From Trichosphaerium sp. ATCC 40318 (Eukaryota > Protista > Tubulinea): 64,000 bases of DNA. Both the position numbers and the translations under genes were made by a program. Each line of letters begins with the position of its first letter. Position 1 is the first letter of the stretch. Shown one piece after another: positions 41,502-53,105 of the stretch. Under the pieces are notes generated by a model, which saw only the letters and a program-made list of their open reading frames with translations, made no database searches and was not told the DNA's origin. The stretch is taken from the NCBI GenBank assembly GCA_038496445.1, contig JALMLS010000315.1, forward strand, positions 62,001-126,000, given 5' to 3'.

Positions 41502-42656
41502 GACGGTTGTCCTCCACCAATTACAACTTTGTACGTGTCTCAAACTTCATATTTTTTTTTTTCGTCTTTACTCTTTGACATGTGTTGACTTTCTACGGCA
41601 GGTAAAAAAAAAAAAAAAAAGAAAAAAAAAAGCAAAAAAAAAAACCGATACCTGGTTGGGTCTTGGTCCAAGATCAATGGTCTTGTGTTGTGAACTACAA
41701 CACATGATAAAAAAAAATACAAAAAAAAATACAAAACGAGACAGCAATGTTTTTTTGGTTTGTTTGCTTGATGTTTATTGGCCAACAACATTCTTTCCAT
41801 GATGTCACTATCTATGGGTATCCCAGAAGAGACTCTAGAGAATTAAAATCACTACCTTTCCTGTATGGAGATACACGAGAGTGAACTTGGAAGAGGATTA
41901 TCTCCTTCTTGAAGGATTTATTTTCCTTTTGGAATCTCTCTCTTATTTTTTTTAATGATCATGTGTTTCATATCTTTAGTTGATACAATGATTGTTGGGT
42001 AGAAAAAAAAAGGGAGAAGATCTTTTGGATCAGAATGTTCATTGGCTTTTTGTTGATGAGGGATCAGAGGTCCTACATCATCAAAAAAAGATCAGCAAAA
42101 AAAAAAACCGGGAAAAAAAAAACACGAGATGTCTCACTTCAACATTCAAACCTGCATATCTCAATTTGACAACAAAAACCTCACATCAATTATTTTACCT
42201 GCATTTACAAAAAAAGAGCTTATAATAAAGAAGGGTCGTCCTCAGTTTATTATTGTTCAACAAAGTTGCACGTTTTCTTCCTTTCTTGGTACTCCGTTTG
42301 TACAAATCCCTAAATACTTCAGATGTTGCCTATTGGAGCGCGTATCTGATAGTTATTGACAAACAGGTCAACAATTATCCAAACAAAATAACTTGAGAAT
42401 GCCGTGAATTGTTTTTCGTTTTATTTAACGCTTAAGTTGAAGCTACAGGTACGACCTTGTACACTATGTAATCCACTCAGAATTATTAGTATACAAATTA
42501 CAGTAGTCTGATGGTTATGACACTTGTAACTAGAAAACTGTTTGTATGGTTCGCTGTCACTAATCGATGGCAGTCATTTTTATGCGAATTCAGTGATTCA
42601 ACGCTTGTAAAGTTGAAAAAAACGCACGTGGCTTCAAGCACTTCAATTCGAACAAA

Positions 42657-49426: not shown

Positions 49427-51042
49427 TTAATCCTCTATTTCACTTTCTTTGGATTTTGCTGTAAGTAACATTGTTCCTTCCTAATAAAAGCATTTAATAC
49501 AAGTGAACCTAAGTCCATTATAATACCGTTATAGGATCAATACTGTTCCGTGGCCTATAGCAATGTCAGAACAAGTACATAATCTGTTAACAATTGTAGA
49601 CTTACTGCATAATACGCTTCGGAAAAACTAAACCATTATAAGGCGAGTTTTGTACAGGAATAAACCACAAGAATGGATTAGGTCCAAAAACTGCTTTCCA
49701 GTTCCTCTTCTTGCCAAGGTCGTACTGTCTATTATTGAAACCTACAAACGGGAATTCTGTCAATATTACCATTTGATGGAGTAGATGTCGTACTCTTTCG
49801 AGCGTCGTCTAGTGTTTCAATCGTGGATTTATTTGACAACACCAACCGTCTAAATTGTATTGTTAGTAAAAACTAACATTGATCTTTCTAGATGTACAAG
49901 TGGGCTGAGACAAAAGGAAGCAATCCTGTGCTAGTTTACAAATTAGTACCACTTTGTTTGAAGTTGCATACCTGCAGAAAAAAGAAAGGAAGCAAACCAC
50001 AAGTACTTGAATATCACCATGTTTCAATTCCTGTCAATTGTTAAAGTTGATAAGATTTTAATTTTCCAATGTTGGTTTTTTACATTAGTACCTTCCAGTC
50101 TATATTAACTACATAGGGTATAGAGGTACCTAAAAACTATTATTAAATAATAAAGAACGAGCTATGTACCTAGAAAGAACCAGCAAAGAATAATCAAGTG
50201 TAACATAAACAACAAGAAGAATTTATAGTTATTGAAACCTACGCTAAAAATATTATTTTAGCTCTTTTTGTTAAGACAACTGACTGTTCAGGCACGTGCC
50301 AGTTATTGACCCTACAAATATTTAAGGATATTTAAATTTAAGACAAATACCTCACCATGGACAGTGATGATCCATCTTGAGCACACAACGATTGCAAATA
50401 CGACAATGGTGGCTTCTAGTACAAAGTGTCAGCATTGTTTTTGTCGACAGCTTTCTTCCCAACACACCTCTCTGGCCGAACATTTTTACATTTTTTGCAC
50501 CAGGCTCTTTCCTCTGTAGAACCATCTTCAACATCTAGAGTAGCTAGATACTAGAAAACCCTTTTTATTCATACGAAACAATTGAAAAACTTTCGTACGT
50601 CGGCTGCTTTGTGTGGTACACTACCAGGATCTATTTCGTATTTTTTATAAATAATCACGTGCGTATAATTGACTTACCTGTAAAGCATACGCGTAGGTAT
50701 GCTATAGCCATCAAAAACCATACAATATGGAATATTGTAACGAAAATAACGCAGAGAGGTATTAAAATGTTCCTAAATAGATATTGTATGTATTTGACGC
50801 TTAAAAATCACGTGTTACCAATAATGTCGCGCTACATACGCCATGTATACGAAATATCCCCATGACACTAGCAATATGACGATAACTATCAAAGGCGAGG
50901 TAGCCCACCACCTTTGGTACGAAGTTAGCATTGTTTGTGCTAAACAAGACTACAACTGTTTTAAAGGCAATCACCTAGCTTTAGAGTAGTAACTACAATC
51001 ACGTAGATCGATGTTAAAGTGTGTTAATCGATCCATATCCAT
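49427..51042 (-). CDS. DHHC palmitoyltransferase
   Basis: [43 protein letters not shown]; STIE; [14 protein letters not shown]; likely start MDMDRL at 51042. Confidence 0.93.
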
Positions 51043-51060
51043 TTGAAATAAGGTTTTGGT

Positions 51061-51230
51061 TAAGTGGTGTTTGAGCCGCTGCTTGGTTCGAGGGATTGCT
51101 ACTACCTAACCCCATGTAAGAGGCGTGCTCTGCACGCCTTGGGAAAGGTACACGGCGGCTACCGCCGCCGTGACTTACGTGCGATCCAATTAAGGACTCT
51201 GAGGAACTTTGACTCGTCAAATACCACTTA
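51061..51230 (+). ncRNA. Candidate structured RNA element of unknown class
   Basis: 14-bp terminal stem, inner 7- and 8-bp helices, two perfect GC-rich hairpins and an alternative/pseudoknot helix; three G-U wobbles favour the + strand. Confidence 0.6.
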
Positions 51231-51399
51231 CACAAAAAAAAAAAAAAAAAGCTTGTAAATTTAGAATTAACATAAGTAAATCCTTCCTTGCTTTTTGCAA
51301 GTTTGCACAGGGAACCTTACAAGTATTACAACAACCAGTTTATTTTTTGCACAATAAATCTACTTTCACATAACGCCAAAGTACCTTCTGTCCTTTAAT

Positions 51400-51654
51400 T
51401 TACTTTATCGTGATACTTGTTCGCTCACCGACTAATGTTTTGGTGTTTGGATTAAATTCTACTTCGTATTCCGTTTTATGCTCCCATTCGTCGTAGGTTC
51501 CTGTAGTCAAGGTGTAATTTACCTTGTAGTTACCATTTGGCAACTGTTTTGAGTTATCAATTGCACATTCGTAAATATCGCAATCATCGTAGTCTATGAC
51601 CTCTTCTACGTCGAACATGCAGTTTTTGAACGCTTTTTGTTGTTCTTCGTTCAT
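51400..51654 (-). CDS. Intronless 84-aa acidic hypothetical protein
   Basis: ATG in A-rich context; globular beta-rich composition. Confidence 0.6.
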   Translation of the reverse strand: MNEEQQKAFKNCMFDVEEVIDYDDCDIYECAIDNSKQLPNGNYKVNYTLTTGTYDEWEHKTEYEVEFNPNTKTLVGERTSITIK

Positions 51655-51841: not shown

Positions 51842-53105
51842 ATGGCTGAAGCTAAAGATTTATCAGATATTCTTGCGCGTATGCGCAAAGATTGTAAAAC
51901 AAAAGCTGTATTTGCGTCTGCGTTATCTACGCTTGGCAAATTAATCGTTAATTTGCAGAAAGAGCCTAATAATAAGGCGTACACGTACGTTTACAAACGC
52001 CAACATCCAAATTTCAGCAAACGTCGCTTATTTTTCTCAGCAAGGTTATGTTCTCCAATAAGGCTATGAAACGAACATTGTACGGCGTAACACAAGTTTT
52101 TTGTGTAATTTGTAACCAACTTTAGGTTTTCAAAAGGCGAAACGCCACAAGAGGTGAGAATACAACACCTTTATGCGTAACTGACAACGAAATAGTTTCT
52201 AGAAGCAACTGGATGGGCTACGCGTGCCAAAGGTATTAAAACATCACCGTAGTACCTAACAGTACTAGGACTCGAGTTTGTTGGCTCTAAAGCGGACCTA
52301 CAGAGGGCTTTAAGGTAAGGCATCGTGTAATTTGGTTATGTAACGTAAAACAGCGCAATACAAGACGCTCAGAATAGCAAAGCGCCAGTGCCTAAGGTTA
52401 TACGCTTCTATGGTGAAAAAAACCAATGGGGATGCTTTTCTAACTTCAGGTACTTTGGAATATCCTTAAATCAATACCACGATTGACAATATACCGCGTT
52501 AGCCCTCACCCATTCCAATTAAAAGGCAAACATTGGCCTACAACCGAACACTATTTTCAAGGTACAAAAAAATAGAAAAACATTATTCAACCGCCTCATT
52601 TTATTATTAGCAATGAAATTTGAAGGTACAGAGCATGAAGAAACAGTGAGAACTTGTAACACAGCTTCAGAATCGAAAAAACTTGGAAGGTATACCTGAA
52701 CTCTCTTAGAGACTTGGCACAAAAAAAAGTTTGACTTACTTTGAATTTAAGGTCGTTTAAGCTTCGTCCTGATTGGGAAACGGTAAAGGTCGAAATTATG
52801 TATGAATGTTGTCTAGGTACGTTGTATTTGAAGAAGAAATGATTGCTAATAGTGATCTTTTTAGAGAAATTTAAACAAAACGCTTCTATACGCCGTATTC
52901 TTCTTGGAACAGAAAATGCAAAGTTAGTAGAACACACAAGAAATGATAGTTATTGGGGTAAGCTAGTGAAGTTGTTATTAAGGTCATGTAACTTATAATG
53001 ATTGTAGGCGATGGAGGTAATGGTAGCGGGCAAAATAAGCTTGGTATTGTGTTAATGAGAGTGCGTGATACAATACGAAAAGAGCAAGAACAAAAGAAAC
53101 CTTAA
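51842..53105 (+). CDS. PUB domain + NADAR (YbiA/DUF1768) fusion protein
   Basis: ALSTLGKLIVNLQKEPNNKAYTKVMFSNK..EFLEATGW; IRFY..FSNF..WPTTEHYFQAMKF..LRPDWETVK..KFKQN..LVEH..DSYWGDG..GQNKLGIVLMRVR. Confidence 0.9.

Follow-up and report, generated by a model that had tools for sequence, protein, structure and literature searches.

We found that positions 51061-51230 of the window, the whole stretch of 64,000 nucleotides (64 kb) analysed here, are a real, unusual and unique structured island within it, with an exceptional structure that adjoins the start codon of a spliced minus-strand gene for a DHHC palmitoyltransferase. As judged from searches against Rfam, the element fits no catalogued RNA family, and we tentatively read it as the body of a structured orphan RNA, ~170-190 nt long, on the + strand.

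A structured G+C island in the window

The + strand of 51061-51230 folds at -74.5 kcal/mol in RNAfold (z -5.57), none of 200 shuffles folds as well, and no other 170-nt window across the 64 kb has a folding energy as low. The minus strand reaches -65.7 kcal/mol (z -4.77), leaving the + strand fold better by 8.8 kcal/mol. Five stems of at least 8 bp are present in the element, where 0.44 are expected and 300 shuffles gave three at most, and the window has just two perfect hairpins whose stems reach 7 bp or more and 60% GC or more, both of which lie inside it. With 53-57% GC against 37% in its surroundings, the element is a G+C island. It is present in one copy in the window: searches of the 64 kb with a 31-mer allowing three mismatches, with the terminal repeat and with covariance model R1 (filters off) returned no second copy, a result that covers the copy-number check proposed by the first-pass annotation for the window.

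Window-wide there are 79 perfect hairpins whose stems have 7 bp or more, against ~33 in shuffles, and nearly all of them are A+T-rich. Elsewhere, the A+T-rich intergenic stretch 41545-41960 has a folding-energy residual as extreme as that of the element, but its sequence is of low complexity, with dense long A and T runs that pair together (A17 at 41604-20).

All the helices drawn by the first-pass annotation are present where it had placed them (Table 1). The terminal stem has one G-U pair, at 51069/51222, and each of the three non-Watson-Crick pairs in the long-range helices is a G-U wobble when read on the + strand but A-C when read on the minus strand, as had been noted. Chance alone would give such an asymmetry in roughly one case out of four, and for this reason it backs the + strand only moderately. 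The alternative helix CAUGUAAG/CUUACGUG is likewise real. It and the 51103-12 helix cross and so do not nest, which makes a pseudoknot possible in geometric terms, and enforcing the alternative helix gives -69.2 kcal/mol against -74.5 kcal/mol for the minimum-energy fold, a cost of ~5 kcal/mol. However, 36% of shuffles also contain one additional 8-bp helix, which leaves the pseudoknot potential without significance by itself.

The complementarity sits in discrete helices, and the spacers between them differ in length (18 against 29 nt; 13 against 0 nt) and carry no residual palindromy (score -8; shuffle mean -6.5). An origin as a decayed DNA palindrome or decayed foldback is thereby rejected, the spacers being non-palindromic and the helices discrete as in an RNA fold. 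Neither end of the element is followed by a T-run of four or more.

Table 1. Coordinates of the element, its parts and the neighbouring features (positions in the window)
Feature	Position	Strand	Remarks
DHHC intron 1	50912-50974	-	63 nt, GT..AG; confirmed by spliced contig (joint 50904>50968, cut +7)
DHHC exon 1	50975-51042	-	ATG 51042-51040; spliced RNA contig 50818-50904 joined to 50968-51044
A-box-like TGGTTAAGTGG, 10/11	51057-51067	+	10 in window against 14 expected
Structured G+C-rich element	51061-51230	+	fold energy, stem counts, single copy in window
Terminal stem, 5' arm	51061-51074	+	14 bp with 51217-51230; mean pair probability 0.89
B-box-like GGTTCGAGGGA	51085-51095	+	87 in window against 77 expected
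GGAUUGC / GCGAUCC	51093-51099 / 51181-51187	+	one U-G; pair probability 0.99
UACCUAACCC	51103-51112	+	pairs with 51141-51150, UACCU/AGGUA (0.92) plus CCC/GGG (0.63)
Upstream ATG	51113-51115	-	only one between T17 and DHHC ATG; out of frame
Alternative helix CAUGUAAG / CUUACGUG	51113-51120 / 51174-51181	+	crosses 51103-12/51141-50 helix
Hairpin 1	51120-51140	+	8 perfect bp plus closing G-U, UCU loop; probability 0.97
Hairpin 2	51151-51172	+	perfect 9-bp stem, 89% GC, UACC loop; probability 1.0
GTAAGT consensus splice donor	51173-51178	-	AG acceptors 51107-06, 51103-02, 51100-099
Terminal stem, 3' arm	51217-51230	+	partner of 51061-51074
A17 run (T17 on minus, directly upstream of element)	51234-51250	+	one of 20 A/T runs of at least 12 in window
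84-aa ORF	51403-51654	-	doubtful gene; no RNA depth, no Pfam match, no homologue, no record

The DHHC gene start and its surroundings

The neighbouring gene encodes a DHHC domain (Pfam PF01529, E 1.4e-10), and its 280-aa model was built from observed RNA joints together with the sequence. Upstream of the DHHC ATG, the element occupies nt 19 to 188, with 18 nt lying between. An N-terminal extension of the protein into the element is ruled out, the frame of the ATG being closed upstream. The upstream ATG within the element opens a uORF of 33 codons that overlaps the DHHC start codon. The gene itself (49555-51042, minus strand) is densely interrupted, with 12-13 introns of 40-63 nt in ~280 codons, and includes a 12-nt micro-exon (50311-50300), backed by an RNA contig and followed by a GC-AG intron (50299-50244).

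The expression data consist of the contigs of one RNA run, examined over 5,001 nt, where their coverage is patchy. These contigs show the spliced mRNA of DHHC and of a PUB-NADAR-type gene. In this run, no contig aligned at 80% identity or more over 51045-51137, and the bin 51138-51304, taken as a whole, has a small depth of 0.62. The deepest contig of the DHHC gene (11.3) is spliced and stops at 51044, and no splice joint was seen inside the element, a region that is without coverage in the same run. The DHHC coding exons at 50470-50803 are likewise at depth 0, and the missing reads over the element are therefore weak evidence either way. That the deepest DHHC contig ends a few bases from the ATG suggests a short leader starting at or just inside the left edge of the element.

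On the far side of the element, the 84-aa ORF, a doubtful gene, is either an orphan or a chance ORF; it is acidic and has an AATAAA 55 nt past its stop codon. The next sure gene beyond it is the PUB-NADAR-type gene on the + strand, with a start near 51842-51881. Its RNA contig begins at 51850, joined to Illumina adapter, 8 nt past the first ATG (51842). With the contig starting 8 nt inside the ORF, translation may in truth begin at the ATG at 51881, and very short leaders may be usual in this organism.

Of the palindromic hexamer CACGTG the window has 55 copies, where 9.8 +/- 3.0 are expected (for example at 50293, 50656, 50809, 49022, 49104, 49115 and 42625). It has some copies in the tiny DHHC introns, just downstream of DHHC and 32 nt upstream of a MORN-repeat ORF, and is probably a widespread factor-binding motif. 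The search for relatives of this MORN-repeat ORF returned no protein above 44% identity, which indicates that a sister genome is absent from the protein collection. Searches with 22-24-mers of the element against metagenomes and prokaryote genomes gave no match.

Readings of the element

Several observations favour an orphan RNA on the + strand. Its z of -5.57, its lowest 170-nt energy in the 64 kb and its five stems of at least 8 bp speak for it as far as structure goes, and the discrete helices with non-palindromic spacers have the layout of an RNA fold. The pairs that are G-U on the + strand are A-C on the minus strand, and the + strand folds better by 8.8 kcal/mol. The element is a G+C island in an A+T-rich genome, and such islands are the usual look of RNA genes in genomes of this composition. 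It is single-copy in the window and lacks a target-site duplication, and the DHHC contig stops at 51044 with no sign of the element in the mRNA. Several points count against this reading. In the patchy contigs of the one RNA run, a transcript of the element was seen on neither strand. No promoter box, TATA or T-run terminator was found, so that of the novel ncRNA proposed in the first-pass annotation the exceptional structure and the lack of a catalogued family stand, whereas the signals of a gene do not accompany them. A + strand start near 51061 would place the promoter inside DHHC exon 1. Finally, the stems are free of mismatches, which is unusual for an old RNA gene.

In such an RNA, the 14-bp closing stem and the internal 7-bp helix would lead into a three-way junction with two perfect G+C-rich hairpins. 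We infer both that the element is transcribed and that RNA, not DNA, is its functional form. Given its head-to-head arrangement with the start of the DHHC gene, our best guess is that it would be a local, promoter-embedded or antisense regulatory RNA and not a housekeeping RNA of the snRNA type.

An unlikely but credible alternative is that the element is read from the minus strand as a cis-acting DHHC leader, a structured 5' UTR of ~190 nt with transcription starting just after the T17. The order of features on that strand (TATA-like TAAATTTA, T17, GTG, element, 18 nt, ATG) suits such a leader, T-runs on the coding strand precede several further likely gene starts of the window by 24-125 nt, and the minus strand retains a fold of -65.7 kcal/mol with a z of -4.8. 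Given the patchy coverage, with the exons 50470-50803 at depth 0, the missing reads over the element weigh little. The deepest DHHC contig (11.3) nevertheless ends at 51044 and no joint is seen in the element. All three long-range wobbles become A-C mismatches on this strand. Through its structure and its uORF such a leader would throttle or gate translation of DHHC, but a fold of -66 kcal/mol combined with an out-of-frame, overlapping uORF would nearly abolish scanning. In a variant of this reading, an intron of 73-80 nt could run from the GTAAGT at 51178 to an AG at 51106-51099, its removal deleting the sole upstream ATG, and the leader has no further ATG outside this putative intron. However, it would be the longest of ~22 local introns, and its GC content is ~62%, whereas the others, in the spliced mRNAs on both sides, measure 36-63 nt and are A+T-rich.

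Fungal and algal leaders of the TPP-riboswitch type offer a likeness in that, on the minus strand, the element is a structured block between promoter and ATG, and in that its consensus donor pairs with the segment bearing the sole upstream ATG. They differ in that the element matches no riboswitch family, its minus strand folds worse than its + strand, and leader and splicing are without reads.

It is fairly improbable that the element is a mobile or inserted sequence without a function of its own, lodged between the T-run of the DHHC promoter and the start codon. One form it could take is that of a MITE-like element or other small foldback DNA, having terminal inverted repeats of 14 bp and a duplicated TA target; another is that of a structured RNA retroposed together with an A tail. 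Consistent with an insertion, the terminal inverted repeat is perfect at 13 of 14 positions and has TA on either side, the base composition is unlike that of the surroundings, a pure A17 follows directly, and the perfect stems suggest youth; with the element taken out, the T17 would stand ~22 nt from the ATG, similar to a neighbouring gene. Yet neither sequence nor model searches found a second copy or a solo terminal repeat in the 64 kb, no transcriptome contig matches 51045-51137 at 80% or more, and the inter-helix spacers are not palindromic. The flanks have no common word of 6 nt or more, and thus no duplication of the retroposition type, and the A-tract that the first-pass annotation had correctly recorded after the element, the A17, is no mark of retroposition, because long A and T runs are common in the window. 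The element resembles MITE and foldback elements in being small, placed beside a gene start and bounded by TA outside 14-bp terminal inverted repeats; it differs from them in its single copy within 64 kb, its G+C-rich composition and its discrete helices in place of a palindrome.

We give little credence to the possibility that the element acts as DNA, as a proximal DHHC promoter with G+C-rich palindromic factor-binding sites. It does lie at roughly -10 to -190 from the likely start of the DHHC mRNA and contains CGTG/CACG cores, five of them inside 58 bp, and window-wide the related CACGTG shows 5.6-fold enrichment; the full CACGTG, however, is absent from the element, and the 14-bp and 7-bp long-range complementarity and the nesting of five helices would be left unexplained.

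An orphan RNA on the + strand thus remains our preferred, if tentative, reading. We see only a slim chance that it represents a new type of small structured RNA, one with neither an outside promoter nor a T-run terminator, placed head to head in a gene start and built as a compact junction, possibly with a double pseudoknot, which would be self-processing or serve as a switch setting DHHC expression.

Catalogued RNA families and the telomere-like 8-mer

Rfam gave no match at the gathering threshold across the whole 64-kb window, and across 50900-51400 matches with E up to 10 were noise only, with no ribozyme, riboswitch or snoRNA family in the element. A scan of the sequence for tRNAs with ARAGORN found none. 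The Infernal/Rfam check suggested in the first-pass annotation thus bears out its view that no known family is present.

The same annotation had raised a compact telomerase RNA with CCUAACCC as template for TTAGGG repeats, and we regard 51061-51230 as very unlikely to be one. The 8-nt CCUAACCC, which is indeed present at 51105-51112 within UACCUAACCC, would supply one repeat plus 2 nt for realignment, and a stable helix ends ~5 nt upstream of it in the fashion of a template boundary. Telomerase RNAs bind TERT and have a single-stranded template, agreeing with the telomere repeat of the organism, of at least one repeat plus realignment bases, and a pseudoknot with a U-rich/A-rich triple helix 3' of the template. 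In the element, by contrast, CCUAACCC is base-paired in both the minimum-energy fold and the ensemble (probability 0.63-0.92), a pairing that the annotation had itself counted against telomerase. The element has no run of four or more U and no U-rich or A-rich strands for a triple-helix pseudoknot; its sole possible pseudoknot uses the template itself, and there is no T-run, Sm site or 3' end of the H/ACA type. Moreover, 8-mers of the CCUAACCC class (CCTAACCC-type) occur eight times in the 64 kb against 9.8 expected, which is chance frequency.

The layout of ciliate-type telomerase RNAs (150-200 nt) comprises a closing stem, a boundary helix, the template, a pseudoknot and stem IV. The element shares with them its size, its long-range closing stem, its single copy in the window and a helix just 5' of the telomere-like 8-mer, and differs in its paired template, in having no triple-helix pseudoknot and in having no U-run at the 3' end. 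In the literature searched, no telomerase RNA was described for heteroloboseans.

That the element is an HDV-like ribozyme is hardly credible, even though its helix order had been correctly likened to these ribozymes. From 51103 to 51181 the order is P1(5'), P2(5'), P3 hairpin, P1(3'), P4 hairpin and P2(3'), which matches their nested double-pseudoknot topology. However, the P3 of HDV-like ribozymes has 3 bp and a loop of ~7 nt, whereas that of the element would have 8-9 bp and a 3-nt UCU loop; its P1 is broken by an internal loop, 0 nt separate P1(3') from P4, and no P1.1 is possible. The J4/2 of these ribozymes carries the catalytic C, and in the element J4/2 is a single A at 51173. The annotation, too, had seen conserved nucleotides to be absent. 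HDV-like ribozymes also cleave themselves at the 5' end of P1.

The remaining identities fail as well. RNase P and MRP RNAs are defined by the conserved regions CR-I and CR-V, which form P4. The likeness to them drawn earlier was not borne out, RF00009, RF00030 and RF00373 being unmatched at the gathering threshold and, within 50900-51400, at E up to 10. A tRNA-type SINE or Pol III type-2 gene, another of the earlier suggestions, is rejected as well: the B-box-like motif reported at 51085 exists, but both it and the A-box-like motif occur at chance level, and their starts are merely 28 nt apart, which makes the pair unfit as a type-2 promoter, the starts of the A and B boxes being ~44 nt apart in tRNAs; the element is also single-copy in the window and its flanks show no target-site duplication. 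The element also lacks the putative signals of an snRNA-type gene of this genome, the DUSE-like box CCCAYAA being absent within 5 kb and a T4+ run absent after either end.

Box C/D snoRNAs carry box C (RUGAUGA) and box D (CUGA) beside a terminal stem. The element has no UGAUGA, its CUGA lies 14 nt from the terminal stem, and this identity is rejected. H/ACA snoRNAs are built as hairpin-hinge-hairpin; their ACA stands 3 nt before the end, and a guide pocket lies 14-16 nt upstream. In the element an ACA does come after the stem (51230-34), but with a lower stem of 14 bp there is no space for the guide pocket.

The result is thus mostly negative with regard to known RNAs: the telomerase idea rests on an 8-mer of chance frequency, and the likenesses to HDV, RNase P and SINEs fail tests of their features. 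If the element is transcribed, it would add a structured RNA without a family to a poorly studied amoeba lineage, and its location right at a gene start would point to a role in local regulation.
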